From the NCBI RefSeq assembly GCF_963506605.1, contig NC_083279.1:82460001-82524000 (forward strand): 64,000 nucleotides of DNA, read 5' to 3'. The notes below the pieces were generated by a model. It did no database searches and had not been told where the DNA came from. It worked only from the letters and a program-made list of their open reading frames with translations. A program made the translations under genes and the position numbers. The DNA is from Zootoca vivipara. Lineage: Eukaryota. Shown in pieces: positions 985 to 56,533 of this stretch; the first letter of the stretch is position 1, and each line of letters starts with the position of its first letter.

Positions 985-3900
985 ATGGATCTCTCTATCA
1001 GTGCTGTGGTCTTCCTGTTCCTCACCTACCACCTCTGTGAGGCAGGTGGTCGAAGCTATAATTCAATCCTCATGGTGCCCAATGGCGGGAAGTGGGGAGA
1101 ATGGGGAAAAATTCAAATCTGTCCCTCAGGATATGCATTCGGATTCGCATTGAAGGTAAAGGCTTCTCTATATCTTCTTTTTGATACCCTGACCCCAAGG
1201 AGTAGTATAATAGTATAGTATAGTATAATATAATTAATATAATATAATATAATATAATATATATATTTCAAGTTGCTTCCCATCTTTCTTTCAGGGGCTG
1301 CTCTTGATGATAGGGGGAGGTACTCTGTACTCTCTCCCCCTTACAATATATATTTCAAGTTGATTGCCATCTTTCTTTCTGAACCTATTGCCTGTATATT
1401 GCTGCCTGCAAGGTTCTTTGAAGTGTTGACTGCCATGCTTAAAGATTTAATAGCTCTAAAAAGTCTCCATGCCACTTTGTCTATCCACAATGGAGAGGCT
1501 TAGAGCAAATTGGATTTTACATAAAAGAAAACTACCATGAATCTGGATGGTCTAGAGCAGGCATCCCCAAACTTCGGCCCTCCAGATGTTTTGGACTACA
1601 ATTCCCATCATCCCTGACCACTGGTCCTGTTAGCTAGGGATCATGGGAGTTGTAGGCCAAAACATCTGGAGGGCCGCAGTTTGGGGATGCCTGGTCTAGA
1701 GGAAAAAAGGGACAAGGATACAGACAAGTTTGGAGTGCAATGAGCTGGCAATATTGTGGTCAGGTTTATCTCCCTGAAAGGTGAGCGCCCAATTGGCAAA
1801 TGCAGACTAAACTGTTAGTGTGAAAGCAATCTTGGTCAGTTCTGGTGCTTTCTAGGAGGGTTGCCATACATCCAGATTTTCCCTGAAATGTCCAGGATTT
1901 CAACAACTTTCCCCAAAAAAGCTCAACAAGTTTTTGTGTCCGGGTTTCACTTCTTGAAATAATATGGCAACCCTAACTTCACAAACTGGAGGAAACCTGC
2001 TGTGGAATATGAAGACATAAGAGAGGGATGGAGGGTGCCTCAGCCAGTCATTATCAAGATCAATTTTTTCTTATTAAATTTGCTTACTTGGGGCCATTGG
2101 ACTGGTTGCACCAAAAAGCTACTGTCTTTTGGTGCAGCTGGGAATGTAAACCTTAATCCATAACCAGTTAATACTTGTACACAAGTAGGGGCCTGTAAGC
2201 TACGGTATTACTTTGGAAAATTTAGACTGCAGACGCAGTCTGAATGGGAGTGTTGTCAGAGTCCAAGTTCGGTTAACTACAATAACAACCCCCCTTTTGT
2301 ATCATACATAATATCTTTTTTCTGTTTTGTTTTCTACATGGGTACGATTTCTTGTTTCTTCAGTTTTGTGTCTGGTCTTACTCTGTACACTTGTAATTTT
2401 TTTATTTTTCAATAAAGGATATAAAACAGAATCATAGCTTGCAAAAACAGCTTTATTGCAGTCTCTTTCTCTCTTTTCCACCAGGTACAGGGAAAACAAG
2501 GTATGTCTACTGATGATACTTCCCTCAATGGCATCCGTCTCCATTGCAGTAGGGGTGACGTTGTACAATCTACCGTCGGACCGTGAGCATCTTCTTGGCT
2601 TTTCTCTGTTTTGTTTGGAAAGTGATGGTGTGAGGGGCTGGCTGAAATCTATTATGCTTCAGCACCAGGGCAGGATAATATCAGGTCAGGGTCTATCAGC
2701 CTCATTCTCAGCTCTCGGAGCCTAAGGATACCAACTCTAGGTTGCCTTCCGAATTTTAGAGGGACCCAAGCCCCACATAACAAAGAGGAAAGAGACTGCA
2801 ACAACAGAGTACAAAGGTCAGGAAAAGCAGAGTTTCTTCCTGAGGACCAGACATCCCAAGGAAAGAGAGAGCAAGAGGAAACCGCCATCTATCCTGAGAG
2901 TGGGGAACCTCAAGTCCAGGGGTCAAATGTGGTCCCCTAGGCTTCTCTGTCTGGTCCTCATGAATATCTGTGACTGTTACAGATATCCCAGCTCCTTTGA
3001 TGACCACACAATTGTTTTGGTACCAGAGATGCTCTGTAACATATTCAAGCAAGACCCCAGCCCCCAGTCTCCAATGCAACACAGAAGACAATTGCTAGGG
3101 CTGGTTAGATGTCCTCATGCCACCCCATTTTGTCTATCTTGGATAGACGATAAATCTACTTGTCAGAGCATTTCGGCTTTGAAACCCCAACCACCTCAGT
3201 GGTGGACTGGTGGTAGAAAGCAAAAAAGATATCACATACTGTTGTATAATATTAATATTAATAGTACAGATAACTACAATATATATATAAGAGAACTACA
3301 ATACAGTGGTACCCCACAAGACGAATGCCTCATGCAACGAAAAACTCACAAGATGAAAGCGTTTTGCATTGCGCGAGGCGTCTCGCAAGACGAAGTTTCC
3401 TATGACCGCGCTTCACAAGATGCAGGGCCGTCTTGAGCAGATCGCGCGCCCTGGTGCTGAGGGGCTGAGATCGCTTCGCCGCCCGCCCCGCCCTCGCAGG
3501 GCGCAATTGGTTTCTGTGCGGCTTTGCCAGCCCCGTGCCATGCTGCACTGCGCCACCGGGGGTCTACGAAGAGCCGGCCCTGACAAGATGAATAGGAACG
3601 CATTAACTAAATGGGTAGACGGGGTAAACCAAGAAAATTTTAAACCATGCTTTGCAAGATGAATTTTTTGCTATACAAAGCAACTCACAGAACAAATTAT
3701 TTTTATCTTGCAAGGTACCACTGTATCTTGTAATCAATTTTAGGCACTTACCAGCATCTGTTTTCATGAAAATTGGGGAATAACCTATACGTTTCAATGA
3801 CAGATTTTTTTAAAAAAAAATGTTTAAAAGTAGGAACTTTTCACATAGAGATTTACCAAGCAAGACCTCAATATTTACAAGGAACCAAATTAGATTTCAA

Positions 3901-4627
3901 ATTACCTCATCATACCACAACTTTTTAACACCCCTCAAATCAGGATTTTTAAAGATGGAAAATTCAACACGCCCTAATATTAGGGTTTAAAACCCCTTTA
4001 AAGATTCTTTAGCTCCATCCCTAGATTGTTCCAGGGGCAGATTGGGAGGGTGTGGTGTGGGTGACCCCTGGGTGGCACAGGGCAAATCCACCTAATCCAG
4101 GGCTCACAACACACAGCCCTTCTTATAAGCTGAGGTTTGGGAGACATACTATACCTGATGAGGTCTACAAAAGACACCTTTAAAAAAATCTAAGGAGGCA
4201 ACTGCCCTCTTGACTTTCGTGTGGAAAGCAATTCATTCCAATTTAGGTCATATTTCCAGAGGAGGCAGACATTACCACATTGTCTCTTTTCTTTTCTTTT
4301 CTTTTCTTTTCTTTTCTTTTCTTTTCTTCTTGCAGGTTGGGAGAGTGGACAAAGATTAAGGAATGCCCCAAGGACTACCTGGTTTCCTTCGCTCTCAGAG
4401 TGGAAGACGATCAAGGGATGTCTGATGATACGGCAGCCAACAACATCCAGTTCAACTGTGGAGATGGGACTGGACTGGAGGGCGAGGGACTGGACTTCGG
4501 TACTTACGGCCCGTCGAGCAAGCGCTGCAAAACTGGTTCCATCTGCGGGATCCAAACAAAGGTGGAGATAGGTTCAAGTAATGATGAAACAGCACTTAAT
4601 GATGTCAGGTTCTTCTGCTGTGACTGA
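985..4627 (+). CDS. VMO1: VMO1-like copy 1; exons 985-1155, 2485-2582, 4336-4627; 186 aa secreted protein
   Basis: GT-AG splice sites join 171+98+292 nt in frame. Signal peptide [91 protein letters not shown]; 8 mature Cys, as in the VMO1 family. The ORF track misses exon 2. Confidence 0.93.
1204..1266. repeat. (TATAG)/(TATAA)n microsatellite in intron 1 of copy 1
   Basis: Visible tandem repeat. Confidence 0.85.
1293..1345 (-). mobile_element. 53-bp terminal remnant of the solo LTR found at 50916-51354
   Basis: Matches 51302-51354 (AGGGGCTGCTCTTGATGATAGGGGGAGG...CCCCTTACA). Confidence 0.8.
1558..1693. mobile_element. hAT-type MITE (136 bp, palindromic)
   Basis: TIR CAGGCATCCCCAAACT; 8-bp TSD GTCTAGAG (1550-1557, 1694-1701); empty site in copy 2. 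Confidence 0.92.
3304..3723. mobile_element. Tc1/mariner (Tigger-like) MITE
   Basis: TIR CAGTGGTACC...GGTACCACTG flanked by TA. Confidence 0.8.
3423..3582. mobile_element. hAT-type MITE nested in the Tigger-like MITE
   Basis: TIR CAGGGCCG...CGGCCCTG; 8-bp TSD ACAAGATG. Confidence 0.85.
4286..4328. repeat. (CTTTT)n microsatellite in the polypyrimidine tract before exon 3 of copy 1
   Basis: Visible repeat; much shorter in copy 2. Confidence 0.85.
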
Positions 4628-4701: not shown

Positions 4702-4707
4702 AATAAA
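4702..4707 (+). terminator. Polyadenylation signal of VMO1 copy 1 (paralogous AATAAA at 21441-21446, 37393-37398, 56608-56613)
   Basis: AATAAA 75 nt after the stop codon in all four copies, followed by a GT-rich element. Confidence 0.75.
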
Positions 4708-6015
4708 TGTTAACGAAAGAGTTGCGTGTACCTTTTGAAGCTTTGTCCCTTCCTGATCTCGATTCCTTAGGCCTGCATGAATTGGTTTTGGATAGGAGGC
4801 CAATGCGAAGTTAAAGAGGGTACCATCCTAGAGCCGTAGTGTGATATCTTTAGCCCATTGATCTAGCCAGGCCCACCAGCCTCTCAATTTGTCCCATGAG
4901 GTTTCTTTGGACAAATCACACCCACTTGCCAATCACCAGCCATCTCAGGCACAGAGATCTCTCATGACTGATCTAAGAACCATGCGGTGAGATTTGAGGA
5001 TTTGAAGGAATCTTTGCACCAAGCATAGCAGCCAACTCCTTTGCCTCCCCCATAAACTATTTGAGGGGGTCATGCCTCCACCCCCCCCAAGTTGATGGGC
5101 ATTGCCATTTGAATGGTGTGCATTACATGATCAATTATGTGGGGCAGAGCTTACCTGCCTCACCCAAAATTGTATTCAAGTCGGCACCCCTGGCACCAAG
5201 CGCCACCAAGAGCCCAAAGTGCAAGCAGAGTCTTATCCCGAATTTTAGCACTCTGCCCAACAGTGCTAAGCTCAGAGATACCTGTAAGCCTCGGGCTGCT
5301 ATTTGAGAGTAGAAGGCAACATTTCCACATATTCCTACTCCAGACAAATTTATTGAAAGATATAATGAAGTTCATTTATGAATCACCGGAATACCAAATC
5401 TTGTAACAATATAGACTATGTATGTTATTTTCTCTTACAGAATTCCTTTTGAGTATTTCTCTCATACACAAGTACAGGAGAGACATCTTTCTATAATACT
5501 TTGGTTGATTGCCTATTCTGTTCTTTCACCAATGAAAAGGAAATGAAATAAAATTAAGAATAGGTGTGTCCCCTCTTATCAGCTGTGAGAGGAGCAGGAA
5601 GAGGAGATACAGGCAGCATGTATGTCAGAGTGTGTGTGAGCAAACAAACGAGGGGTGGCAAGGTGAAACATTCACCTCTTGTGGTCATGGCAGACAGAAG
5701 TGGGTTAGGAGGAGCTGCTTCTCATAGTGCTCAGCCCTAGGAAGATGCAGAGGTCACCTGGTTAAGAGGCGGGAAAGGCCTCAGAATGCAGCAAGCCGGA
5801 AGTTTGCACAACTGCTTACTAAAATGAAATGAAGAGGTGGGGGAAGAGATGTTGCCAAAAGAGAACCGGGGCCTAGGAGGCCCTCTAAGAAACATAGGAG
5901 TGCTCCCTAAAATGCACTAATGTTTGGTTGTAATTACTTTGTGCTGCTCTGGGCAAACACATTTAATCAATAAAATAGAAATCTCAGTAGAAGCAGCCCC
6001 CCATCATTAAAAAGC

Positions 6016-6963
6016 ATAGAATCATAGAGTTGGAAGAGACCACAAGGGCCATCCAGTCCAACCCCCTGCCAAGCAGGAAACACCATCAAAGCATTCTTGA
6101 CATATGGCTGTCAAGCCTCTGCTTAAAGACCTCCAAAGAAGGAGACTCCACCACACTCCTTGGTAGCAAATTCCACTGCTGAACAGCTTTTACTGTCAGG
6201 AAGTTCTTCCTAAAGTTTAGGTGGAATCTTCTTTCTTGAAGTTTGAATCCATTGCTCCGTGTCCGCTTCTCTGGAGCAGCAGAAAACAATCTTTCTCCCT
6301 CCTCCATATGACATCCTTTCATATATTTGAACATGGCTATCATATCACCCCTTAACCTTCTCTTCTCCAGGCTAAACATACCCAGTTCCCTAAGCCGTTC
6401 CTCATAAGGCATCATTTCCAGGCCTTTGACCATTTTGGATGCCCTCCTCTGGACACGTTCCAGCTTGTCAGTATCCTTCTTGAACTGCGGTGCCCAGAAC
6501 TCGGCACAGTACTCCAGGTGAGGTCTGACCAGAGCAGAATACAGTGGTACTATTACTTCCCTTGATCTAGATGCTATACTCCTATTGATGCAGCCCAGAA
6601 TTGCTTTGGCTTTTTTAGCTGCTGCATCACACTGTTGACTCATGTCAAGTCTGTGGTCTACCAAGACTCCTAGGTCCTTTTCACATGTACTGCTCTCAAG
6701 CCAGGTGTCACCCATCCTGTATTTGTGCCTTTCATTTTTTTTGCCCAAGTGTAGTACCTTACATTTCTCCTTGTTAAAATTCATCTTGTTTGCTTTGGCC
6801 CAGCTGTCTAATCTGTTAAGGTCATTTTGAAGTGTGAACCTGTCCTCTGGGGTATTAGCCACCCCTCCCAATTTGGTGTCGTCTGCAAACTTGCCCAGGA
6901 TGCCCTCAAGCCCATCATCCAAGTCATTGATAAAGATGTTGAATAAGACTGGGCCCAAGACAG
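6016..6963 (-). mobile_element. CR1 LINE, 5'-truncated
   Basis: ORF2 C-terminus ([26 protein letters not shown]..), (ATTCTATG)n tail; empty site at about 40950. Confidence 0.95.
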
Positions 6964-7084
6964 CAACTGTTTCAATAGTGAAGCATAAGACAATATGAAG
7001 TTGAATATACAACATCACTAAAAAGTATACAGCCACATCTAAAACGCTGAGGATTCAAAGGTTCACTTTTAAAACATCGGACAA

Positions 7085-13400: not shown

Positions 13401-15233
13401 CCAGGACGATCCGTTAAAGGCAAGTCTCTCTCGGCTGCACAGAGGACACATAGAATCATAGAATAGAATAGAATCATAGAATCATAGAGTTGGAAGAGAC
13501 CACGAGGGCCATCCAGTCCAACTCCCTGCCAAGCAGGAAACACCATCAAAGCATTCCTGACAGATGGCTGTCAAGCCTCCGCTTAAAGACCTCCAAAGAA
13601 GGAGACTCCACCACACTCCTTGGCAGCAAATTCCACTGCCAAACAGCTCTTACTGTCAGGAAGTTCTTCCTGATGTTTAGGTGGAATTTTCTTTCTTGTA
13701 GTTTGAATCCGTTGCTCCGTGTCCGCTTCTCTGGAGCAGCAGAAAACAACCTTTCTCCCTCCTTTATATGACATCCTTTTATATATTTGAACATGGTTAT
13801 CATATCACCCCTTAACCTTCGCTTCTCCAGGCTAAACATACCCAGCTCCCTAAGCCGTTCCTCATAAGGCATCGTTTCCAGGCCTTTGACCATTTTGGTT
13901 GCCCTCTTCTGGACACGTTCCAGCTTATCAGTATCCTTCTTGAACTGTGGTGCCCAGAACTGGACACAATACTCCAGGTGAGGTCTGACCAGAGCAGAAT
14001 ACAGTGGTACTATTACTTCCCTTGATCTAGATGCTATACTCCTATTGATGCAGCCCAGAATTGCATTGGCTTTTTTAGCTGCTGCATCACACTGCTGACT
14101 CATGTCAAGTTTGTGGTCAACCAAAACTCCTAGATCCTTTTCACATGTACTGCTCTCAAGCCAGGTGTCTCCCATCCTGTATTTGTGCCTTTCATTTTTT
14201 TGCCCAAGTGTAGTACTTTACATTTCTCCTTGTTAAAATTCATCTTGTTTGCTTTGGCCCAGTTGTCTAATCTGTTAAGGTCATTCTGAAGTGTGATCCT
14301 GTCCTCTGGGGTGTTAGCCACCCCTCCCAATTTGGTGTCATCTGCAAACTTGCTCAGGATTCCCTCAAGCCCATCATCCAAGTCATTGATAAAGATGTTG
14401 AACAAGACTGGGCCCAAGACAGAACCCTGTGGCACCCCACTAGTCACTACTCTCCAGGATGAGGAGGAGCCATTGATGAGCACCCTTTGGGTTCGGTCAG
14501 TAAGCCAGCTACAAATCCACTGAATGGTAGCATTGTCTAGCCCACATTTTACCAGCTTCTTTACAAGAATATCATGGGGCACCTTGTCAAAGGCCTTGCT
14601 GAAATCAAGATAGGCTACATCCACAGCGTTCCCTTCATCTACCAGGCTTGTAATTCTGTCAAAAAATGAGATCAGATTAGTCTGACATGACTTATTTTTC
14701 AGGAACCCATGCTGACTTTTAGTGATCACAGAGTTTCTTTCTAGGTGCTCACAGACTGTTTGCTTAATGATCTGCTCTAGAATCTTTCCTGGTATTGATG
14801 TCAGGCTGACTGGGCGGTAATTGTTTGGGTCCTCTCTTTTCCCCTTTTTGAAAATAGGGACAACATTTGCCCTCCTCCAGTCTGCTGGAACTTCGCCTGT
14901 TCTCCAGGAATTTTCAAAGATTATTGCCAGTGGTTCTGAAATCACCTCTGCCAGTTCTTTTAATACTCTTGGATGTAGTTCATCTGGCCCTGGAGACTTG
15001 AATACATCTAAACTAGCCAAGTATTCTTGACACGCTGTTAGCTTGTTCCGAATGCACAGGCCGAAAGAGGAAGGTCTGGGTCATGTGGATGGGTATATAT
15101 AGGTCCCTCGATCCGTTTGGACCCATTGGCCAGATTGAACCCAACATCGAGGGACCTACCAATCAGGTGTTGTGACTGACCAATCTTACCCACCCACAAC
15201 ATAGGAGGTCGGTCTCCAGGTCTCACCGCAACA
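10420..15233 (-). mobile_element. Ngaro/DIRS-order retrotransposon remnant (terminus, gag-like ORF, RT, start of RNase H), interrupted by CR1
   Basis: RT: HPHDFKLLG..YYVDKAMPLGCSISC..HYLDDYL; QSLLGHLNFACRVVAPGRPF; RNase H VHSD; frameshifted. Confidence 0.85.
13450..15028 (-). mobile_element. CR1 LINE with full RT domain, inserted in the Ngaro terminus
   Basis: [38 protein letters not shown]; one frameshift in a T-run near 14200; TSD GACAC; empty site at about 47920. Confidence 0.95.
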
Positions 15234-16276: not shown

Positions 16277-17152
16277 TAGAATCATAGAGGTGGAAGAGAC
16301 CACAAGGGCCATCCAGTCCAACCCCCTGCCAAGCAAGAAACACCATCAAAGCATTCCTGACAGATGGCTGTCAAGCCTCCGCTTAAAGACCTCCAAAGAA
16401 GGAGACTCCACCACACTCCTTGGCAGCACATTCCACTGTCGAACAGCTCTTACTGTCAGGAAGTTCTTCATAATGTTTAGGTGGAATCTTCTTTCTTGTA
16501 GCTTGAGTCCATTGCTCCGTGTCCGCTTCTCTGGAGCAGCAGAAAAGAACCTTTCACCCTCTTCTATATGACATCCTTTAATATATTTGAACATGGCCAT
16601 CATATCAGCCCTTAACTTTCTCTTCTCCAGGCTAAACATACCCAGCTCCCTAAGCTGTTCCTCATAAGGCATTGTTTCCAGGCCTTTGACCATTTTGGTT
16701 GCCCTCCTCTGGACACGTTCCAGCTTGTCAGTATCCTTCTTGAACTGAGGTCCCCAGAACTGGACACAGTATTCCAGGTGAGGTCTGACCAGAGCGGAAT
16801 ACAGTGGTACTATTACTTCCATTGATCTAGATGCTATACTCCTATTGATGCAGCCCAGAATTGCACTGGCTTTTTTAGCTGCTGCATCACACCGTTGACT
16901 CATGTCAAGTTTGTGGTCTACCAAGACTCCTAGATCCTTTTCACATGTACTGCTCTCATGCCAGGTGTCTCCCATCCTGTATTTGTGCCTTTCATATATA
17001 TTTTTTTGCGCAAGTGTAGTACTTTACATTTCTCCCTGTTAAAATTCATCTAATTTACTTTGGCCCAGTTTTCTAATCTGTTAAGGTCATTTTGACGTGT
17101 GATCCTGTTCTCTGGGGTATTAGCCACCCCTCCCAATTTGGTGTCATCTGCA
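16277..17152 (-). mobile_element. CR1 LINE, 5'-truncated
   Basis: ORF2 C-terminus [20 protein letters not shown]...; empty site at about 48500. Confidence 0.93.
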
Positions 17153-17860: not shown

Positions 17861-18216
17861 TTGACACATTAAATGATTTATAAAAGTACAAGTGAGGAAC
17901 TCAAACTGTAAGATATTATATTATTTTATTATTATCTTTCTGTTTGGGGTGGGACAAATGTTTTGTCAGGGTGGGTAGTAGTGGGTTGTAGCATAACTGT
18001 TTCTTGTTTTGTTTCTACTTTTATTATTTTGTTAAGTTATTGTATAGTTTGTATTTGCTTTTAAATGGGAATGGGTCAGGGCTGCCTGGGGGAAACACAA
18101 GATTCAGGAAGATTTTGAGCAGAGGAGAGAGAACCACAATTTCTGGGGAATAAATTCTCAATGCTGTTATTCTTCCATTCAGTTTTTGCAGCTCGATCTG
18201 GTGCAGTCCACCTTCC

Positions 18217-21200
18217 ATGGATCTCTCTACCAGTGCTGTGGTCTTCCTGTTCCTCACCTACCATCTCTGTGAGGCAGGTGGTCGAAGCTATAATTCAATC
18301 CTCCTGGTGCCCAATGGCGGGGAGTGGGGAAAATGGGGGAAAATTGAATACTGTCCTTCAGGATATGCATACGGATTCTCATTGAAGGTAAAGGCTTATC
18401 TATATCTTCTTTTTGATACCCNNNNNNNNNNNNNNNNNNNNNNNNNNNNNNNNNNNNNNNNNNNNNNNNNNNNNNNNNNNNNNNNNNNNNNNNNNNNNNN
18501 NNNNNNNNNNNNNNNNNNNNNNNNNNNNNNNNNNNNNNNNNNNNNNNNNNNNNNNNNNNNNNNNNNNNNNNNNNNNNNTTCCCATCTTTCTTTCTGAATG
18601 CATTGCATGTATGTTGCTGCCTGCAAGGTTCTTTGAAGTGTTGTCTATCCACAATGGAGAGGCTTAGAGCGAATTGGATTTTACATAAAAGAAAATTACC
18701 ATGAATCTGGATGGTCTAGAGGAAAAAAGGGACAAGGATACAGACAAGTTTGGAGTGCAATTAGCTGGCAATATTGTGGTCAGGTTTATCTCCCAGAAAG
18801 GTGAGCGCCCAATTGGCAAATGCAGACTAAACTGTTAGTGTGAAAGCAATCTTGGTCAGTTCTGGTGCTTTCTAGGAGGGTTGCCATACATCCAGATTTT
18901 CCCTGACATGTCCAGGATTTCAACAACTTTCCCCAAAAAAAAGCTCAACAAGTTTTTGTGTCCGGGTTTCACTTCTTGAAATAATATGGCAACCCTAACT
19001 TCACAAACGGAAGAGTCCAAGTTACAGGTAGGTAGCCGTGTTGGTCTGGATCGAAGTAAAATAAAAAAATTCCTTCAGTAGCACCTTAAAGACCAACTAA
19101 GTTTTTATTTTGGTATGAGCTTTCGTGTGCATGCACACTTCTTCAGTGAAATGGAAGTTTCCAGGCACTTATGTAGAGAAGGGGTGGGGAGGGGTGGGGA
19201 TGGGGAGGGGGGATCACTCAGAAGGGTGGTGGAAATGGGTGATTGACTGACTGATAGCTGTTGATGACCGGAAACGACTGCAAATGGTTTTGTATGAAAA
19301 AGCAAGGGTTGAGATGGCTGAAGATCGCTTATCATGTATAATGAGATAAGAATCCGATATCTCTGTTCAAACCAGGTCCCTCCATGGTTTTGAGCTTGGT
19401 GATAAGTTGCAATTCAGCAACTTCTCTTTCCAGTCTATTTCTGAAATTCTTTTGTAGTAAGACAGCTACTTTGAGATCTTGTATAGAATGTCCTGGGAGA
19501 TTGAAGTGTTCTCCTACTGGTTTTTCTGTCTTCTGGTTCCTGATGTCAGATTTATGTCCATTTATCCTTTGGCGTAGGGTTTGGCCTGTTTGTCCAATAT
19601 AGAGAGCTGAAGGGTCCAAGTTCGGTTAACTACAATAACAACCCCCCTTTTGTATCATACATAATATCTTTTTTCTGTTTTGTTTTCTACATGGGTACTA
19701 TTTCCTGTTTCTTCGGTTTTGTGTCTGGTCTTACTCTGTACACTTGTAATTTTTTTATTTTTTAATAAAGAATATAAAACAGAGTCCCAGCTTGCAAAAA
19801 CAGCTTTATTGCAGTCTCTTTCTCTCTTTTCCACCAGGTACAGGGAAAACAAGGTGGTACTACTGATGATACTTCCCTCAATGGCATCCGTCTCCATTGC
19901 AGTAAAGGTGAAGTTGTACAATCTACCGTCGGACCGTGAGCATCTTCTAAACTTTTCTCTTTTTTGGTTGGAAAGTGATGGTGTGAGGGGCTAGCTGAAA
20001 TCTATTATGCTTCAGCACCAGGGCAGGATAATGTCAGGTCAGGGTCTATCAGCCTCATTCTCTGCTCTCGGAGCCTAAGGATACCAACTCTAGGTTGCCT
20101 TCTGAATTTTAGAGGGACCAAAGCCCCACATAACAAAGAGGAAAGAGACTGCAACAACCAAGTACAAAGGTCAGGAAAAGCAGAGTTTCTTCCTGAGGAC
20201 CACACATCCCAAGGAAAGAGAGAGCAAGAGGAAACCACCATCTATCCTGAGAGTGGGGAACCTCAAGTCCAGGGGTCAAATGTGGTCCCCTAACTTCTCT
20301 GTCTGGTCCTCATGAATATCTGTGACTTTTAGGGGTCAGGACCTCAGGCAGGAAGGAGAGGCAGGCTGAGCAAAAAAGCTGTATGAAAAGGCCAAGACCT
20401 ACCTAACCAGTGGCTGTGCCTTCCTGAGAGAAAGTTGAAGCTCTCCTTCCTGCTGGGGGCACTGGCTTAAAAAATCAATGCCTCCACTCAACAGCTGTTT
20501 AGCAGAGACCTTGATCCTGTGGGGTGCAGATGCTGCTTTGCCAGTGGCTTTCTTGCAGGAAAGTCACTACCACTTAAGTGAGTGGATCCCATTCTGGGTT
20601 GGTGCTGGTCACTCAACTTCATGAAGGAGTAGCAACACCCCACAGAATCAGGTCGTTCTGCTTAATATCTGTTAGGCAGGGGAGTAAATCCTGCATAGCA
20701 CTGATGCACCCTGACCTTAAACAAACCCCATTCTTAACAGAATATTAGGGTTTAAAATCCCTTTAAAGATTATTTAGCTCCATCCCTAGATTGTTTCAGG
20801 GGCAGATTGGGAGGGTGTGGTGTGGGTGACCCCTGGGTGACACAGGGCAAATCCACCTAATCCAGGGGTCACAACACACAGCCCTTCTTAGAAGATGAGG
20901 TTTGGGAGACATACTATACCTGATGAGGTCTACAAAAGACGCCTTTAAAAAATCTAAGGAGGCAACTGCCCTCTTGACTTTCGTGTGGAGAGCAATTCAT
21001 TCTGATTTGGATCATATTTCCAGAGGAGGCAGACCTTACCACGTTGTCTCTTTTCTTTTCTTTTCTTCTTGCAGGTTGGGAGAGTGGACAAAGATTCAGG
21101 ATTGCCCCAAGGACTACCTGGTTTCCTTCGCTCTGAGAGTGGAAGCCAATCAAAAGATTGGTGATGATACGGCAGCCAACAACATCCAGTTCAACTGTGG

Positions 21201-21366
21201 AGATGGGACTGGACTGGAGGGCAAGGGACTGGACTTCGGTACTTACGGCCCGTGGAGCAAGCGCTGCACCGCTGGTTCCATCTGCGGGATCCAAACAAAG
21301 GTGGAGATAGGTTCAAGTAATGATGAAACAGCACTTAATGATGTCAGGTTCTTCTGCTGTGACTGA
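18217..21366 (+). CDS. VMO1: VMO1-like copy 2; exons 18217-18387, 19838-19935, 21075-21366; 186 aa
   Basis: Same exon sizes and phases as copy 1, canonical splice sites, no stops; exon 2 [32 protein letters not shown]. Confidence 0.93.
18422..18578. other. Assembly gap (157 N)
   Basis: Run of N at the intron-1 microsatellite position. Confidence 0.99.
19024..19613 (-). mobile_element. Penelope-like retroelement, 5'-truncated, in intron 1 of copy 2
   Basis: GIY-YIG endonuclease half [34 protein letters not shown]; TSD GTCCAAGTT. Confidence 0.92.
19112..19146 (-). ncRNA. Minimal hammerhead ribozyme core in the Penelope terminus
   Basis: CTGAAGA-A-GTGTG CATG CACAC-GAAA-GC-TC-ATACC; 5' arm of helix I missing. 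Confidence 0.6.
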
Positions 21367-23397
21367 ATCACCTGGGCTTCATCCTGCTACAACACAGCTG
21401 CCTGTGTTCTAATGGTTTGTTGGCATGAAACTTAACCAACAATAAATCTTAACAAAAGAGTTGTGTGTACCTTTTGGAGCTTTGTCCCTTCCTGATCTCG
21501 ATTCCTTAGGCCTGCATGAATTGGTTTTGGATAGGAGGCCAATGCAATGTTAAAGAGGGTACCATCCTAGAGCCGTAGTGTGATATCTTTAGTTCATTGA
21601 ACTAACCAGGCCCCCCAGCCTCTCAATTTGTCCCATGAGGTTTCTTTGGACAAATCACACCCACTTGCCAATCACCAGCCATCTCAGGCACAGAGATCTC
21701 TCATGACTGATCTAAGCACCATGCGGTGAGATTTGAGGATTTGAAGGAATCTTAGCACCAAGCATAGCAGCCAACTCCGAGGGGCCGTGGTCCTTTGCCT
21801 CCCCCATAAACTATTTGAGGGGGTCATGCCTCCACCCCCCAAGTTGATGGGCATTGCCATTTGAATGGTGTGCATCATGTGATCAATTATGTGGGGCAGA
21901 GCTTACCTGCCTCCCCCCATATTGTATTCAAGTCGGCACCCCTGGCACCAAGCGCCACCAAGAGCCCAAAGTGCAAGCAGAGTCTTATCCCGAATTTTAG
22001 CACTCTGCCCAACAGTGCTAAGCTCAGAGATACTTGTAAGCCTCGGGCTGCTATTTGAGAGTAGAAGGCAACATGTGCACATATTCCTACTCCAGACAAA
22101 TTTATTGAAAGATATAATGAAGTTCATTTATGAATCACCGGAATACCAAATCTTGTAACAATATAGACTATGTATGTTATTTTCTCTTACAGAATTCCTT
22201 TTGAGTATTTCTCTCATACACAAGTACAGGAGAGACATCTTTCTATAATACTTTCGTGGACTGCCTGTTCTGTTCTTTCACCAATGAAAATGAAATGAAA
22301 TAAAATTAAGAATAGGTGTGTCCCTTCTTATCAGCTGTGAGAGGAGCAGGAAGAGGAGATACAGGCAGCATGTATGTCAGAGTGTGTGTGAGCAAACAAA
22401 CAAGGGGTGGCAAGGTGAAACATTCACCTCTTGTGGTCATGGCAGACAGAAGTGGGTTAGGAGGAGCTGCTTCTCATAGTGCTCAGCCCTAGGAAGATGC
22501 AGAGGTCACCTGGCTAAGAGGAGGGAAAGGCCTCAGAATGCAGCAAGCCGGAAGTTTGCACAACTGCTTACTAAAATGAAATGAAGAGGTGGGGGAAGAG
22601 ATGTTGCCAAAAGAGAACCGGGGCCTAGGAGGCCCTCTAAGAAACATAGGAGTGCTCCCTAAAATGCACTAATGGCTGGTTGTAATTACTTTGTGCTGCT
22701 CTGGGCAAACACATTTAATCAATAAAATAGAAATCTCAGTAGAAGCAGCCCCCCATCATTAAAAAGCATAGAATCATAGAATCATAGAGTTGGAAGAGAC
22801 CACGAGGGCCATCCAGTCCAACCCCCTGCCAAGCAGGAAACACCATCAAAGCATTCTTGACATATTGCTGTCAAGCCTCTGCTTAAAGACCTCCAAAGAA
22901 GGAGACTCCACCACACTCCTTGGTAGCAAATTCCACTGCCGAACAGCTCTTTCTGTCAGGAAGTTCTTCCTAATGTTTAGGTGGAATCTTCTTTCTTGAA
23001 GTTTGAATCCATTGCTCCGTGTCCGCTTCTCTGGAGCAGCAGAAAACAATCTTTCTCCCTCCTCCATATGACATCCTTTCATAGATTTGAACATGGCTAT
23101 CATATCACCCCTTAACCTTCTCTTCTCCAGGCTAAACATACCCAGTTCCCTAAGCCGTTCCTCATAAGGCATCGTTTCCAGGCCTTTGACCATTTTGGTT
23201 GCCCTCCTCTGGACACGTTCCAGCTTGTCAGTATCCTTCTTGAACTGTGGTGCCCAGAACTCGGCACAGTACTCCAGGTGAGGTCTGACCAGAGCAGAAT
23301 ACAGTGGTACTATTACTTCTCTAGATCTAGATGCTATACTCCTATTGATGCAGCCCAGAATTGCTTTGGCTTTTTTAGCTGCTGCATCACACTGCTG

Positions 23398-23742
23398 TGT
23401 CGGAGAACCAGCCGACTCTTAGGTGCGAGGAAATCATGAGACGAGAGTCAAGAGTTTCAGATTGAGAGCATGAGCAGAGTGCGCTGACTGCCTCTCAGCC
23501 TCAGCTCCTTTATTAAGGATCCTTTCCTCGTAAAAAACATTAACCTTTTAACCTATACATGACTCATGCAAACAAGGAAGATGTGTAAACCGACAGGCTG
23601 GCGCCAGTGGTCCTGTGGTAAATCACTTGATTGATTACCCCCCAATAAACCTGTGCCTTACACAGAGAACTCCATTTGTACATTCCCACAGAGTATTTCC
23701 TGTGTACATTCCCACAGAGTATTTCCTGTGTACATTCCCACA
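23398..23742 (-). repeat. ERV 3' LTR
   Basis: Preceded on the minus strand by PPT AAAAAGAAAGAGGTGA; contains AATAAA on the minus strand. Confidence 0.95.
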
Positions 23743-23762
23743 TCACCTCTTTCTTTTTATTT

Positions 23763-25100
23763 TTAAGCAACAGGGTTAATCAACTCATCGGAAGCCTCGA
23801 TAGGGAGTCGCTGATACCTCGCAACGAAGGCTCCACGTGAAATTCCACGTGAAATTCCAGTGGAGGGGCGTGCAGCCTGAAACCAGGTCATGCATTGACC
23901 AAAGAGGGAGGGTAAACATTGAATGCAGCAACATAACATAACCAAGCCACAGGCTAATCCTATAAGCGTCAAAAGTGTTTTCCTGATCCAGGCACCGTTA
24001 GGCAACCAAGACAGCAGCCATTCCCATGGATCAAAACCCACGGCAGGTTGCAAGGGCCGTGCAGCCACCAAGTTCTCCATTTCTTGTATAATATGAGTAA
24101 TGTCAGGACCATTATCTTGCACATACATGCAACAATGACTATGTATTAAGGCACATACGCCTCTTTTCGAGGCTAAAATCACATCCTGTAATTCTGTATT
24201 GATCAATTTCATGCCTTTAACTGTGTCGTTGAACAAAGCCTCTGTCCAGTTAGCTAAGTGATGCAAATCTCTATAATTCATTTTGCTACTCCTAATAATG
24301 GCAAAATACTACAAGCTATCTGAGTATCAATATATTGTGTTATAGGGGCATTGACTTCGTGTTTATTGCGCAAGCGGGTGTGAGGAAGAGCATCTAACTT
24401 ATACACCAGTGGTATCACTACCCCTAGAGTGCAAGTCCCTGAAAAAGCAGAGGGAATCTCTTTCTATTCTTTCTTACCACACAAAAGCCACAGATTTGAT
24501 TGTAACACGCATGTGGATCTCCAACTCTTCTTCATCCAATCAAACCATGAATGAAAATCACGGCATGTAGCCTGTTGGTAATATGTCATGTATCTGGTAA
24601 CATTATTAATTGTTACCTTGGGCCTGCCGCTTTGGGTAGTGACGTTAAGAAAACAAGAGCTACCATTAACATATAAGTCCAATTACAATAAGGATAAGGA
24701 CCTAAAAATCTGCTACTATCGTGATTAAAACGAAAACATCGTGGAGCTACTTCTAATAATGATAATATAACAGGGGGTGAACTAATACGATTATCTCTCA
24801 TATTATTACTAATTCTAAAAGAATCATTAATAGGAATACCATGCAGTAATATACCCAAATGGTGTGACTGCGGGGGAATATGTAAGCAAATCCAACAATC
24901 AGAATAGTTAAGCAATTTCGCAAACTGAGAAATATCCTGTACATAGGTATTATTATTCCATATGGAATGATAAGAGTCAGGTCTTTGATACTTCTGTAAA
25001 ATGGCAGCACGCCTAGAGCGATTATGGCTTGCAGATCGAATAAATGGAAGGTGATCTTAACGGAGTGCAGCCATATTTAGAACACGATGCCGCCAGGTGC
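23763..25100 (-). pseudogene. env: ERV env remnant, gamma-type
   Basis: SU CWIC (CxxC), TM CALIHSHCC (CX6CC), hydrophobic membrane anchor; frameshifts and a deleted ISD. Confidence 0.8.
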
Positions 25101-25199
25101 AATGATGTTTCAGACCGGGTGACAGGTGCTGTCCTCCAGAAAGAGTGTAGAAAGGTCTGCCTCCTCCCTTTGCGGCATCTGCGACTGAATGGGCTGAAG

Positions 25200-28478: not shown

Positions 28479-28480
28479 CT

Positions 28481-32250: not shown

Positions 32251-32469
32251 ATGGATCTCTCTACCAGTGCTGTGGTCTTCCTGTACCTCACCTACCGCCT
32301 CTGTGAGGCAGGAGATAGGAAGTATAATTCAGTCCTCACGGTGCCCAATGGCGGGAAGTGGGGAGAATGGGGAAAAATTGAATTCTGTCCTTCAGGATAT
32401 GCATCAGGATTCCTAGTGAAGGTAAAGGCTTCTCTATATCTTCTTTTTGATACCCTGATCCCAAGGAAT

Positions 32470-32535
<66 letters not shown>

Positions 32536-50259: not shown

Positions 50260-50662
50260 AATATTAAAAATTTCTATTCTATTCTTGTTGACACATTAAA
50301 TGATTTATAAGAGTACAAGTGAGGAACTCAAACTTTATGATATTGTATTATTTTATTATCATCTTTCTGTTTGCGGTGGGACAAATGTTTAGTCAGGGTG
50401 GGTAGTAGTTTAATTTTAGCATAATTGTTTCCTGCTTTGTTTCTACTTTCATTATTTTGTTATGTTATTGTATAGTTTGTATTTGCTTTATAAGGGGAAA
50501 GGGTCAGGGCTGCCTGGGAGGGGTTTCCCTCTAGGGGGAAACACAAGATTCAGGAAGATTTTGAGCAGAGGAGAGAGAACCACAATTTCTGGGGAATAAA
50601 TTGTCAAGGCTGTTATTCTTCCATTCAGTTTTTGCAGCTCGATCTGGTGCAGTCCACCTTCC

Positions 50663-53600
50663 ATGGATCTCTCTACCAGTGCTGTGGTCTTCCTGTTCCT
50701 CACCTACCACCTCTGTGAGGCAGGAGATCGGAAGTATAATTCAGTCCTCACGGTGCCCAATGGCGGGAAGTGGGGAGAATGGGGGAAAATTGAATTCTGT
50801 CCCTCAGGATATGCATCTGGATTCTCATTGAAGGTAAAGGCTTCCCAAGGAGTAGTCACTATAATATAATATAATATAATATAATATAATATAATATAAT
50901 ATAATATAATATAAATGTCAGGGGATTCTTGCGACTACTCTCGAGTAACGACGCTCCTCATGTTACTTTTCCACAACGTGTTTATTGGTGCCTCTATTTA
51001 CAGTGAGCTAGGTGCAGAAACATGTCTTCTTACTCCAATGCAGAATCTGGAAGTGCCCCCCGGCGCGAACGCCCCCAACATAAATGTCGCGGGACACTGA
51101 ATCTCCTCCCCTTTCTTCTCTTTCGTAATTCCGGAACCGGATGAAAGGGTCTGCGGTCCATGTTTTCCCTCTCCCCATTTTCCCCTTCTCTCTCCTCCCG
51201 CCTGTGGAGTCTGGGCTCTTTCCTCCTGCCTGAGCCCTGGCACTCTCTCTCCGTGTCCTGACTAGCCTCCCCCGAGCCTGTGCTTCCTTCGCTGCTCGGG
51301 GAGGGGCTGCTCTTGATGATAGGGGGAGGTACTCTGTACTCTCTCCCCCTTACAATATATATTTCAAGTTGATTGCCATCTTTCTTTCTGAACCTATTGC
51401 CTGTATATTGCTGCCTGCAAGGTGCTTTGAAGTGTTGACTGCCATGCTTAAAGATTTAATAGCTGTAAAAAGTATCCATGTCACTTTGTCTATCCACACT
51501 GGAGAGGCTAAGAGTGAATTGGATTTTACATAAAAGAAAACTACCATGAATCTGGATGGACTGGAGGAAAAAAGGGACAAGGATACAGACAAGTTTGGAG
51601 TGCAATGAGCTGGCAATATTGTGGTCAGGTTTATCTCCCTGAAAGGTGAGCACCCTATTGGCAAATACAGACTAAGCTGTTAGTGTGGAAGCAACCTTGA
51701 TAAGTTCTGGTGCTTTCTAGGTGGGTTGCCATACATCCAGATTTTCCTTGACGTGTCCAGGATTTCAACAACTTTCCCCCCAAAAGCTCAACAACAGTTT
51801 TGTGTCCAGATTTCACTTCTTGAAATAATATGGCAACCATAACTTCACAAACTGGAGGAAACCTGCTGTTGAATATGAAGACATAAGAGAGGGATGGAGG
51901 GTGCCTTAGCCAGTCATTAGCAACATCAATTTTTTTCTTATTAAAATTGCTTACTTGGGGCCATTGGACTGGTTTCACCACAAAGCTACTGTATTTTGGT
52001 GCAGCTGGGAATGAAAACCTTAATCCATAACCAGTTAATACTTGTACACAAGTAGGGGCCTGTAATTATGAACAGATAACTGCTAATTCAGGTTGCAAGC
52101 TAGTAGTTTGGAAAATTCAGACTGCAGATGTAGTCAGAGTCCAAGTTCGGTTAACTACAATAACAACCCCCCCCTTTTGTAACATACAAAATATCTTTTT
52201 TCTGTTTTGTTTTCTACATGGGTACTATTTCTTGTTTCTTTGATTTTGTGTCTCGTCTTACTCTGTACACTTGTAATTTTATACTTTTTATTTTTCAATA
52301 AAGAATATAACACAGAGTCCCAGCTTGCAAAAACAGCTTTATTACAGTCTCTTTCTCTCTTTTCCACCAGCCATCAGTAGAAGATTTTGATGGTGATGCT
52401 ACCGGCCTCAGTGGCATCCGTCTCCATTGCAGTAGTGGTGAAGTTATACAATCTAGAGTCGGACTGTAAGTATCTTCTTGATTTTTCTCTTTGTTGCTTG
52501 GAAAGTGATGGTGTAAGGGGCTGGCTGAAATCTATTATGCTTCAGCACCAGGACAGGATAATGTCAGGGCCTATCAGCCTCATTCTCAGCTCTCGGAGTC
52601 TAAGGATACCAACTCTAGGTTGCCTTCTGAATTTTAGAGGGACCCAAGCCCCACATAACAAAGAGGAAAGAGACTGCAACAACAGAGTACAAAGGTCAGG
52701 AAAAGCAGAGTTTCTTCCTGAGGACCACACATCCCAAGGAAAGAGAGAGCAAGAGGAAACCACCATCTATCCTGAGAGTGGGGAACCTCAAGTCCAGGGG
52801 TCAAATGTGGTCCCCTAACTTCTCTGTCTGGTCCTCATGAATATCTGTGACTGTTAGGGGTCAGGACCTCAGGCAGGAAGGAGAGGCAGGCTGAGCAAAA
52901 AAGCTGTATGAAAAGGCCAAGACCTACCTTTACCAGTGGCTGTGCCTTCCTGAGAGAAAGGAGGCACAATACTGAAGCTCTCCTTCCTGCCAGAGGAACT
53001 GGCCTAAAAGATCAATGCCTCCAATCAACAGCTGTTTAGCAGAGACCTTGATACTGTGGGGTCCAGGTGCTGCTTTGCCAGTGGCTTTCTTGCAGGAAAG
53101 TCACTACCACTTAAGTGAGTGGATCCCATCCTGCATGGTGCTGGTCACTGGACTTCATGAAGGAGTAGCACCACAACACAGAATCAGGTCATTCTGCTTA
53201 ATATCTGTTAGGCAGGGGAGTAAATCCTACATATCACTGATGAACCCTGACCTTAAAAAAAACCCCATTCTTAAGAGAATATTACGGTTTAAAACCCCTT
53301 TAAAGATTCTTCAGCTCCATCCCTAGATTGTTCCAGGGGCATATTGGGAGGGTGTGGTGTGGGTGACCCCTGGGTGGCACAGGGCAAATCCACCTAATCC
53401 AGGGGTCACAACACACAGCCCTACTTAAAGTTGAGGTTTAAGTAGAGCTGGACCATAAAGAAGGCTGATCGCCGAAGAATTGATGCTTTTGAATTATGGT
53501 GCTGGAGGAGACTCTTGAGAGTCCCATGGACTGCAAGAAGATCAAACCTATCCATTCTTAAGGAAATCAGCCCTGAGTGCTCCCTGGAAGGACAGATCGT

Positions 53601-56533
53601 GAAGCTGAGGCTCCAATACTTTGGCCACCTCATGAGAAGAGAAGATTCCTTGGAAAAGACCTTGATGTTGGGAAAGATGGAGGGCACAAGGAGAAGGGGA
53701 CGACAGAGGACGAGATAGGGGACGACAGAGGACGAGATGGTTGGACAGTGTTCTCGAAGCTACGAACATGAGTTTGACCAAACTGCGGGAGGCAGTGCAA
53801 GACAGGAATGCCTGGCGTGCTATGGTCCATGGGGTCACGAAGAGTCGGACACGACTAAACGATTAAACAACAACAAACATACTATTGCATTAGGAACAAA
53901 ACGAGAGAAAAAGTAAAGATGGAAATTTTAAAAAAATTATGGAGAATGAGAAAAAGCTAATTAAAAATCCAAACAATGTGAAAATAAATCAGAATATCAA
54001 AATGTTACAAAGTCAGTTTGCAATGATTATTAATCAAGAAGTGAAATGGAATATAAAAAGAATGAGACAGAAATTTTTTGAATTTGCAAATAAATCAGGC
54101 AAATGGCTGGTGTGGCAAATCAAAAAAAGGAAATCCCAAATTAAAATTAATAAAATAACCTTGGAAGGAAAAGAAGTAGAGAATCTGAAAGAAATTAGGA
54201 ATGGATTTTAAAATTTTTATAGACAGTTATATAAAAAAGCTGGAAAGGGAAATATAAGCAGAATTGAAGAATATCTAAACAAAAAGAAGTGCAACAAATT
54301 CCATCAGAATAGAAAGAGCGACTGAATGAGTTAATGGAAATTGAAGAAATTTAAAATGCAATAAAAGAATTAAAAAGTGGAAAGGCGCCAGGACCAGATG
54401 GATTCGCTGCAAAATATTATAAAGAACTGAAACATACCCTGCTTGTACCGTTAGAAGAAGTTATGAATAATATATTAAAGAATGGAGAAATACCAGAAAC
54501 ATGGAACATGGAAAGAAGCAAATATCACATTAATACCCAAACCAGACTCTGATTCATTGTAAGTTAAAAACTATTGGCCGATTTCATTATTAAATAATGA
54601 TTATAAATTATTTGCAAGTATTTTGGCAAATAGATTGAAAAAAGTATTGAATGAAATAATACATACAGATCAAGCAGGCTTTCTTCCTGGCCGACAGATG
54701 AAATATAATATAAGGAATGTGGTGAATATCATTGAATATTTGATGGCCAGGAATGAAAAGTAAGCGACATTAATCTTTTTGGATGCAGAGAAGGCCTTTG
54801 ATAATATATCCTGGGAATTTATGGTAAAGAATTTGGAATTAATGGATATTGGACAATTGTTTATAAGAGGAATTAAAGCGATATATTCTAATCGAAAAGC
54901 AAAATTAATAGTAAATAATGTAGTAACAGAAAATATTGAGATTACGAAAGGTACAAGACAGGGATGTCCATTGTCACCATTATTATCCATCTCGGTTCTG
55001 GAAGTCTTCCTAAAGACCAGGCATCCCCAAACTGCAGCCCTCCAGAAGTTTTGGCATACAACTCCCATGATCCCTAGCTAACAGGACCAGTGGTCAGGGA
55101 TGATGGGAATCGTAGTCCAAAACATCTGGAGGGCCGAAGTTTGGGGATGCCTCCTAAAGACTATAAGGGAAAATGAGAAAATAAAAGGAATTTCAGTTGG
55201 CAGAAGAGAGTATAAAGCCTTTGCAGACGACTTGGCATTAACAGTGGAAGACCCATTATGCAGTATTAATGAGGTATTAGAAGAAATTGAACAATTCGGA
55301 CAAGTTGCAGGTTTTAAATTAAACAAAAAGAAAACTAAAATGTTGGCTAAAAATGTGAAACAAGATTTGGTGGATAGGTTGCAACAACAGACTGGTATAG
55401 AAATAGTCAAAAAAGTAAAGTATTTTGGAATTTGGTTAATATTTAATATTTAATATTTGAGTAATATTTACTGATTGTAATGTTTGAAAGAAAATATAAA
55501 GAAAATGATGTATTGATGGTATATCACACCAGTGAAATTAGCCAAAACGTATAAAACAGGTAATAAATGTTGGAAATGTAAGGAAAAAGAAGGAACGTTT
55601 TATCATATATGGTGGGAATGTAAGAAAGTGAAAAACTTCTGGAAAATGATATACAATGAGATGAAAAAGATGTTAAGATATACATTAATTAAAAACCCAG
55701 CTTTTCTACTTGGTATTGTAGGAGAGGATATTAGCAGACAAGATAAAAAAAACTGTTTTTGTATGTGACGACGGCATTAAGAGTACTATTGGCACAGAGA
55801 TGGAAACAAGAAGAATTACCGATGATAGAAGAATGGCAGACGAAGTTAATGGACTACACAAAATTGGACAAGATGACAGGGAGAATTCAAAACTGGCGGG
55901 ACCAGAGGTTCTTGAAGGACTGAACTAAATTTGAGAATTATTTGAAAAACAATTGTAAACAACAAATTATGCTAGTAGGTTTGCAAGAAGTTTTGTAAGG
56001 AGAAATACATGAAATATTATAGAGAACATTTAGGAATATAAAAATTGGTTATTGTTTATTAAAAGTAATAGTGAATTACGGGACACAAGGATAAGTTAGG
56101 AAGATTGGAAAACTTTAGATGGTTTGATGGAAGTACAAAAAAAATATTGTACTGTATAAGATATGAATGAATGTTAAAGGATGTATCGAATTTCCAGGGA
56201 GGCAGACATTACCATATTGTCTTTTTTTTTTTTTGCAGGTGGGGAGAGTGGAAAGAGGTTAAGAAATGCCCCTCCAAGGCCTACCTGGTTGCCTTCGCTC
56301 TGAGAGTGGAAGACGAACATGGGAAAATTGATAATACAGGAGCCAACAACATCGAGTTCAACTGTGGAGATGAGACTAGACTGGAGGGCAACGGACTGGA
56401 CTTCGGTAAATACGGCCCGTGGAGCAAGCGCTGCACCGCTGGTGCCATCTGTGGGATTCAAACAAAGGTGCAGGGTTTAGTTGACCTTGATAACACAGCA
56501 CTTAATGATGTCAAGTTCTTCTGCTGCGACTGA
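50663..56533 (+). CDS. VMO1: VMO1-like copy 4; exons 50663-50833, 52371-52465, 56239-56533; 186 aa
   Basis: 171+95+295 nt in frame; exon 2 [31 protein letters not shown]; exon 3 [24 protein letters not shown]...[14 protein letters not shown]. Confidence 0.9.
50859..50914. repeat. (TATAA)n microsatellite in intron 1 of copy 4
   Basis: Visible repeat. Confidence 0.9.
50916..51354 (-). mobile_element. Solo LTR (probably Gypsy-type) in intron 1 of copy 4
   Basis: TGTCAGGGG...CCCCTTACA inverted termini in an AT repeat; AATAAA on the minus strand; TSD obscured by the microsatellite. Confidence 0.75.
53444..53876 (+). mobile_element. BovB (RTE) LINE 3' fragment
   Basis: [45 protein letters not shown]; (CAA)n tail. 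Confidence 0.93.
53886..56180 (+). mobile_element. Degraded L1-clade LINE in intron 2 of copy 4 (same insertion as in copy 3)
   Basis: [37 protein letters not shown]; same 3' junction before exon 3. Confidence 0.88.
55018..55153. mobile_element. hAT MITE (paralog of 35084-35218)
   Basis: 8-bp TSD CTAAAGAC. Confidence 0.9.

Follow-up and report, generated by a model that had tools for sequence, protein, structure and literature searches.

The DNA analysed here is a 64,000-nt window of the Zootoca vivipara genome (assembly GCF_963506605.1, contig NC_083279.1, positions 82,460,001 to 82,524,000 of the forward strand; positions below are counted within this window), which contains four VMO1-like genes in tandem, all on the plus strand and with three exons each (g1 to g4; ATGs at 985, 18217, 32251 and 50663). 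The mature-coding parts of these genes have diverged faster than the introns and flanks in which they are embedded, and the variation peaks in three hairpin loops of the encoded proteins. We therefore read the locus, with a probability of roughly 0.75 judged from sequence, as a tandem array that evolves by birth and death and encodes secreted, lectin-like beta-prism proteins under diversifying selection. The genes themselves are already publicly annotated in RefSeq; the new part is the exon-specific acceleration and the three hypervariable loops.

Among the four copies, which form two pairs (g1/g2 and g3/g4), the coding sequences (CDSs) show a divergence (K) of 0.06-0.19 compared with 0.03-0.06 in aligned noncoding DNA and are 2-4 times more diverged. 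The mature-coding parts differ by 5-28%, and the upstream DNA, the signal-peptide part, both introns, the 3' untranslated region and the downstream DNA by 1-7%. This step is sharp at the exon borders, with 3.7-6.0% divergence within 25 nt outside the mature-coding part versus 8.7-16.8% inside. A divergence gradient away from the exons, which would be expected if conversion tracts were selected against, was tested for and not found. The sequence-only reading of this DNA had described open reading frames (ORFs) that are all preserved while the surrounding DNA is riddled with indels and transposable elements. The intactness of the ORFs holds, as do the indels, with 2.4-10 gap openings per kb in the aligned noncoding DNA among the units; the mature-coding DNA, however, is the fastest-changing DNA of the locus. 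A description as intact ORFs in decaying surroundings can mask the opposite pattern at the sequence level.

Whole-CDS Nei-Gojobori estimates gave ratios of nonsynonymous to synonymous divergence (dN/dS) of 0.88-1.36, with a dS that appeared to be three times the intron divergence. The dS estimate is inflated because, of the ~65 codons that differ in a cross-pair comparison, 22-30 contain two or three substitutions. Clean four-fold sites differ by 4-11%, which is not significantly above noncoding DNA, and a genuinely high whole-CDS dS was rejected on these grounds as a multi-hit codon artefact. With noncoding divergence as the reference, all six comparisons gave a dN/K(noncoding) of 1.7-4.1 for mature-protein positions outside the loops, and the ratio was 6.5-23 inside the three loops, which were chosen after inspection and in which the alignment is uncertain. 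When alignment columns were split according to how conserved they are in species that do not belong to the lacertid clade, omega was 0.15-0.56 in conserved columns and 1.4-2.5 in variable columns (cross-pair p = 0.011-0.041, the four cross-pair tests sharing one internal branch and the pairwise tests not being independent). At columns with a conservation of 90% or more elsewhere, each gene departs in only 1-3 residues. Whole-protein analyses were based on the RefSeq proteins, which equal the exon translations, and codon counts exclude the codon that the exon 2-exon 3 junction interrupts.

Approximately 4.6% of random point changes in the CDSs would make a stop codon, and 77% of the noncoding gaps are not multiples of three. 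The ~130 substitutions among the copies include zero stops and zero frameshifts, and all exon length differences are multiples of three. These comparisons indicate purifying selection on the scaffold combined with positive selection on the surface of the proteins, with simple decay excluded. Between species, orthologues of two VMO1 lineages (lineages A and B) are 90-91% identical outside the loops when Zootoca is compared with Podarcis or Lacerta, versus 75% outside and 38% inside the loops for the clade of the window's genes (clade D), in which the comparison is approximate because the pairs include paralogues. As a separate observation, the introns and flanks of g1/g2 differ from those of g3/g4 by only 4-6% (e.g., 1692-2979 versus 32724-34025), and by 3-4.5% within pairs. 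This low cross-pair noncoding divergence could reflect either a partial homogenisation of the noncoding DNA or a tree distorted by selection.

Variable positions in the proteins are enriched outside the strands (odds ratio 2.0, p = 0.028) and cluster in three homologous hairpin loops (L1 to L3) located between strands ending in '...KV/RVE' and strands starting with 'DDT...'. In DNA alignments of the copies, the loop segments are replaced block-wise, appearing as short blocks almost without similarity amid near-identical sequence and accompanied by small compensated indels. The cysteines of each hairpin are located at its open end according to both the alignment and the structural model. In the structure of chicken VMO-I, the base of the prism holds four disulfides, and its top has a cavity into which sugars could fit (PMC9363672). 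Given the cysteines at the open end of the hairpins and the position of the published cavity opposite the disulfides, L1 to L3 should therefore surround this cavity, and by this topological argument the three loops probably form a ring around a putative sugar-binding site.

The scaffold carrying these loops is that of the VMO1 family, of which g1 to g4 are intact members by every tested sequence and structure criterion, each gene being predicted to encode a secreted beta-prism I protein of ~166 residues. The Pfam family VOMI (PF03762), which is also carried by the RefSeq proteins identical to g1 to g4, was matched exon by exon. Exon 1 corresponds to profile positions 2-33 (23.9-25.7 bits), the short piece encoded by exon 2 to positions 33-54 (12-19 bits) and exon 3 to positions 67-167 (105-114 bits versus a cut-off of 25). 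An N-terminal hydrophobic leader of ~20 residues, predicted to be a signal peptide, is present in all four proteins, and the alignment with the mature chicken chain 1VMO begins at residue 23 (E 3.9e-53, 56% identity). Exons 1, 2 and 3 contribute two, one and six Cys to each precursor (nine in total), one of which lies in the signal peptide. The remaining eight occupy family-invariant or near-invariant columns in all four genes and are likely to form four disulfides per protein. An AlphaFold model of the g3 protein (82 homologues, pLDDT 87, pTM 0.83) shows the beta-prism I fold of three Greek-key repeats, preceded by a low-confidence helix at residues 4-17. Its top Foldseek match in the PDB was 1vmo_A (E 4.4e-18, TMt 0.91, root-mean-square deviation 1.9), with jacalin-type lectins next.

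No N-glycosylation sequons were identified in the g1 to g4 proteins. The lizard proteins are acidic, with an isoelectric point (pI) of ~5 and a net charge of -3 to -5, and the cationic antibacterial mechanism proposed for chicken VMO1 should not be carried over to them. An unusual charge as a special trait of the window copies was considered and rejected, as most VMO1 homologues are also acidic.

A translated self-search of the window (G+C content 44.6%) recovered each of the three exons in precisely four copies, all on the plus strand, and tblastn identified no extra exon fragments in the window beyond the four gene copies. The CDSs of g1, g2, g3 and g4 comprise 561, 561, 567 and 561 nt, respectively. 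All eight introns are of the GT...AG type, are in phases 0 and 2 and contain a pyrimidine tract ahead of the acceptor. The exon translations are found exactly and in order in four RefSeq "VMO1-like" proteins, and the NCBI pipeline has therefore picked identical splice sites. The successive ATGs are spaced by 17232, 14034 and 18412 bp. Conserved features of all four genes further include a TATA-like AATAAAT motif 68-69 nt upstream of the ATG and a poly(A) signal downstream of the stop codon (Table 1). In addition, an acceptor-like TTTGCAG ending 25 nt upstream of the ATG is conserved in g1 to g4 (953-959, 18185-18191, 32219-32225 and 50631-50637), and a non-coding 5' exon may exist in these genes.

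The Zootoca genome encodes at least nine VMO1-like proteins on one chromosome. In phylogenetic trees of 86 (broad) and 48 (lacertid-focused) proteins, both of which show several old squamate lineages, g1 to g4 are located inside a lacertid-only clade (support 100/99* and 100/98*) whose sister is an amphisbaenian copy (99/95*; 100/98*). Zootoca-only pairs within this clade are formed by g1 and g2 (100/96-99*), by g3 and g4 (100/99*), and by a third pair of proteins, XP_060129986 and XP_060129990. The Lacerta protein P0008 groups with g3 and g4 (97/89*); in the protein tree, this places the split between g1/g2 and g3/g4 before the divergence of Zootoca and Lacerta. Podarcis has its own VMO1 multiplications, and Anolis sagrei, Paroedura and Emydura show separate expansions in the tree. 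Multi-copy VMO1 is thus common in reptiles, and on this phylogeny the window's expansion is lineage-specific at two levels, first in lacertids and then in Zootoca.

Most of what had been proposed from the sequence alone is confirmed by these analyses. The gene models and their identity with RefSeq proteins agree with the four complete three-exon genes with signal peptides, eight Cys, intact splice sites and poly(A) signals that had been described, and the ATG spacing of 14.0-18.4 kb agrees with units of 14-18 kb. The assignment to the VMO1 beta-prism family is supported by the VOMI matches, the alignment with 1VMO and the model comparison, and the grouping into two pairs by amino acid identities of 88% (g1/g2) and 81% (g3/g4) together with the tree. 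The proposed lineage-specific secreted multigene family is upheld as regards the lacertid-only clade and the Zootoca-only pairs, but requires revision in scope, because the family is larger and multi-copy VMO1 is widespread in reptiles.

According to the explanation we favour, the array would have grown by repeated duplication of single units, presumably through unequal crossing-over between the repeat-rich 14-18 kb units, first in the lacertid ancestor and again in the Zootoca lineage, giving rise to the pairs g1/g2 and g3/g4. Selection would retain the scaffold, i.e., the cysteines, the Gly/Trp motifs and the strands, while driving fast amino acid replacement and small in-frame indels on the surface, with the change peaking in three pseudo-threefold-related hairpin loops at the prism end opposite the disulfides. 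A fixed scaffold with diversified loops at a putative cavity suggests a panel of proteins with differing binding specificities, and the array most likely supplies such a lectin-like panel, with glycans as putative ligands. This panel could be used in an exocrine or egg-associated secretion to recognise changing targets such as microbial or gamete glycans. More tentatively, lacertids might carry a germline-encoded panel of variable lectins, with three symmetric loops at the binding cavity that selection diversifies genus by genus, as in the evolution of venom toxins or immune receptors, that would serve in innate recognition or as a protein chemosignal in exocrine or reproductive secretions.

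An alternative explanation that we consider unlikely is concerted evolution, in which gene conversion keeps introns and flanks alike and the exons display their true, older divergence instead of positive selection. The cross-pair noncoding divergence is hardly above that within pairs, yet Lacerta P0008 groups with g3 and g4, and paralogs cluster by species in the tree, both of which are consistent with conversion. However, conversion tracts would not be expected to stop at exon borders, and at each of these borders divergence falls to the intron level inside 25 nt and without a gradient, which counts against this explanation. Furthermore, exonic four-fold sites are not significantly more diverged than noncoding DNA, and in exon 1 the part encoding the signal peptide matches the introns in conservation.

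Somewhat less probable still is a classical egg-coat role, in which copies were amplified for VMO1 dosage in the vitelline membrane or egg envelope. In the chicken, VMO1 is produced in the oviduct and is among the main components of the outer vitelline layer (PMC9363672), and the 8-copy VMO1 expansion of the Amur ide was interpreted as egg protection (PMC5854124). Dosage selection should, however, keep the copies alike, whereas the mature proteins of the window diverge faster than neutral DNA. VMO1 also occurs outside eggs: among the proteins listed for the tears of the loggerhead turtle it ranks third in abundance, and there are reports of it in snake venom or venom glands and in the lip glands of male frogs. 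Two other, conserved VMO1 lineages in the Zootoca genome could carry the ancestral role. A function in the egg membrane should not be taken for granted for the window's genes.

Relaxed constraint, under which redundant duplicates drift and a dN/dS near 1 signals ongoing loss of function, is improbable. The whole-CDS dN/dS range given above agrees with it, as do several departures from conserved residues. In g1, a Ser (4514-4516) replaces a Trp that is present in 91% of the rows outside the lacertid clade and in all other rows of this clade, and in g4 the conserved DDTxLNG motif contains the changes D to A (52398-52400) and N to S (52410-52412). In addition, repeat 2 begins with Leu in g1 and g2 (4337-4339 and 21076-21078) compared with Trp in g3, g4 and the family consensus. 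These Leu, Ser and Ala departures are possible signs of early decay or may be part of the diversification. Under relaxed constraint dN should equal the neutral references, but it exceeds both of them (noncoding DNA and four-fold sites); moreover, columns conserved in other taxa maintain their low omega, and the substitutions have accumulated without a stop or frameshift and with GT-AG kept in 8/8 introns. An assembly artefact, with the copies being either tandemly placed haplotigs or a repeat that was collapsed or misjoined, is highly improbable. Although exon 1 of g2 is separated from exons 2-3 by a scaffold gap, divergence among the copies (3-6% in noncoding DNA, 6-19% in the CDSs) is far beyond allelic levels. 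The units also differ in length, in long interspersed nuclear element (LINE) pieces and through a 5.4-kb provirus that has a target-site duplication of its own, and RefSeq annotates four separate genes. The sequence on either side of the gap is collinear with three paralogs and closest to g1.

Several points weigh against diversifying selection on a lectin-like array. The cross-pair noncoding divergence of 4-6% is oddly low for a split placed before the Zootoca-Lacerta divergence, and if noncoding DNA is being homogenised by gene conversion, its use as a neutral reference may introduce a bias. The pairwise tests are interdependent, with the four cross-pair comparisons on one internal branch, and the loops were picked after their variability had been seen, with uncertain alignment inside them. 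The whole-CDS Nei-Gojobori dN/dS is just 0.9-1.4, and the loss of the conserved Trp in g1 together with the two motif departures in g4 could mean that decay is beginning. That the loops surround the cavity is a topological argument and not a measurement on coordinates. Finally, the function of the genes, and even their transcription, is putative.

The assembly gap in g2 is the single run of N in the window (Table 1). It is located 1259 nt upstream of exon 2, and exon 1 closes on a complete codon at 18387; the gap is thus wholly intronic and affects no codon, splice site or reading frame of g2. Both flanks are collinear and co-oriented with g1, g3 and g4; g1 is the closest copy for the left flank (95.2%) as well as for the right one (98.3%). 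Microsatellites are present at the matching intron position in the paralogs (1206-1265 in g1, 32472-32516 in g3 and 50860-50914 in g4), which is a plausible cause of the assembly break. The flanks show no sign that exon 1 and exons 2-3 of g2 derive from different copies, although physical continuity across the gap is a claim of the assembly and is unproven from the window alone.

Towards its downstream end the window contains the probable start of a fifth repeat unit (Table 1), whose exon 1 lies outside the window, with none found before the window end at 64000. The upstream sequence of this unit is followed by a 346-aa ORF (62635-63675) without a Pfam match. The RefSeq model XP_060129990 (142 aa), which lacks an exon 1, may represent the next gene of the array. 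Rfam and tRNA scans of the window gave no matches.

Structural turnover is ongoing in the array, as seen from a provirus in unit 2, LINE pieces and a 2.1-kb duplication. The endogenous retrovirus provirus (23398-28825, minus strand, 5.4 kb) is present in unit 2 only. Its long terminal repeats (23398-23742 and 28481-28825) are 345 bp each, 100% identical and have TG...CA ends; the 6-bp target-site duplication is CTGCTG, and unit 1 has the corresponding empty site near 6632-6637. An open gag ORF (633 aa) contains Gag_p10 and the p24 N and C domains, and of pol only reverse transcriptase (RT) thumb and integrase segments are present, in two frames. Protease, RT palm and env domains were not recognised in the provirus, which is therefore internally deleted. 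It looks very young and inserted after the g1/g2 duplication. LINE-type reverse transcriptase fragments (Pfam RVT_1) are located in intergenic DNA at 6089-7036, 13549-15020, 16277-17152 and 60297-61672, and LINE copies of ~950 bp with 93-95% identity at 6012-6963, 13472-14422, 16277-17152 and 22755-23397.

The 2.1-kb direct duplication comprises 41860-43970 and 44682-46826, which share 98.1% identity. Between its two arms is a 715-bp segment (43969-44683), and this segment matches the g4 3' flank (56915-57628) at 99.0% identity. The arrangement at 41860-46826 either arose by recent rearrangement or is what remains of a unit that has since been lost between g3 and g4. The intergenic DNA between g3 and g4 also contains a CT-rich low-complexity tract of ~240 bp (40196-40438). 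Additional microsatellites were found at 4285-4328 (TCTTT, directly upstream of g1 exon 3), 38702-38760 and 58058-58134.

Table 1. Coordinates of the VMO1-like genes, their loops and associated features in the window
Feature	Positions	Strand	Remark
g1 exon 1: ATG, signal peptide, repeat 1 start	985-1155	+	RefSeq XP_060129280.1
g1 exon 2	2485-2582	+	
g1 exon 3, to stop codon	4336-4627	+	
g2 exon 1	18217-18387	+	RefSeq XP_034971858.2
g2 exon 2	19838-19935	+	
g2 exon 3, to stop codon	21075-21366	+	
g3 exon 1	32251-32421	+	RefSeq XP_060129988.1
g3 exon 2	33537-33634	+	
g3 exon 3, to stop codon	37021-37318	+	
g4 exon 1	50663-50833	+	RefSeq XP_060129989.1
g4 exon 2	52371-52465	+	3 nt shorter than exon 2 of g1-g3
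g4 exon 3, to stop codon	56239-56533	+	
Loop L1	g1 2485-2514; g2 19838-19867; g3 33537-33566; g4 52371-52397	+	
Loop L2	g1 4403-4426; g2 21142-21165; g3 37091-37117; g4 56309-56332	+	
Loop L3	g1 4565-4585; g2 21304-21324; g3 37256-37276; g4 56471-56491	+	
TATA-like AATAAAT, g1	917-923	+	68 nt upstream of ATG; putative promoter role
AATAAAT equivalents, g2, g3, g4	18149-18155; 32182-32188; 50595-50601	+	
AATAAA poly(A) signal, g1	4702-4707	+	75 nt past stop
AATAAA poly(A) signals, g2, g3, g4	21441; 37393; 56608 (starts)	+	75 nt past stop
Assembly gap, 157 N, unfilled	18422-18578	.	g2 intron 1, starts 34 nt past donor
Probable fifth repeat unit start	61939-62636	+	88.5% identical to 48916-49663 upstream of g4

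In general, VMO1 is regarded as an egg or tear protein whose function is uncertain and which is present in one or two copies, compared with at least nine copies in Zootoca. Vertebrates are described as having one or two VMO1 paralogs in the Amur ide report (PMC5854124). A literature search of limited coverage retrieved no description of VMO1 arrays or expansions in reptiles or of selection on VMO1, and the sole VMO1 expansion found described in the literature searched is that of the Amur ide (Leuciscus waleckii). Like the lizard array, this is a lineage-specific multiplication (eight paralogs), but it occurred independently in a teleost, and an acceleration of exons relative to introns is not among what the part of the report at hand describes (PMC5854124).

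The lizard proteins share with chicken VMO1 the family and fold, three internal repeats, eight cysteines and a signal peptide. A carbohydrate-binding or transferase-like activity is known only for chicken VMO1 (PMC9363672); this protein is also described as cationic (pI 10), as binding sugars and heparin and as weakly antibacterial. In contrast to it, the lizard proteins are acidic, their genes are multi-copy and fast-evolving, and repeat 2 of g1 and g2 starts with Leu. Jacalin-related beta-prism I lectins, the next-best structural matches after 1VMO (TMt 0.58-0.74), have the same three-sheet prism, with a sugar-binding site built by loops at one prism end. Sequence identity to these lectins is only 8-16%, and sugar binding by the lizard proteins is putative.

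In its mode of evolution, the array recalls snake toxins such as three-finger toxins and phospholipases A2, including the process termed 'ASSET', in which tandem three-exon duplicates retain conserved signal peptides and introns while the mature-coding parts diverge much faster and short exon segments are switched block-wise on a fixed disulfide scaffold (PMC2474615, PMC2711939, PMC6062510). The toxins have an unrelated fold, and the likeness is one of mode, not of membership. Shared features of this mode in the window are mature exons that change faster than introns and flanks and a non-synonymous rate that is above the neutral one in the pairwise comparisons. In one reptile VMO1 subfamily, exons change faster than introns, a pattern for which venom toxins are the best-known example, and the change is focused on loops that probably form the ligand site. 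The pattern points to a binding function under arms-race or recognition pressure, for which four genes with three loops each provide concrete targets.

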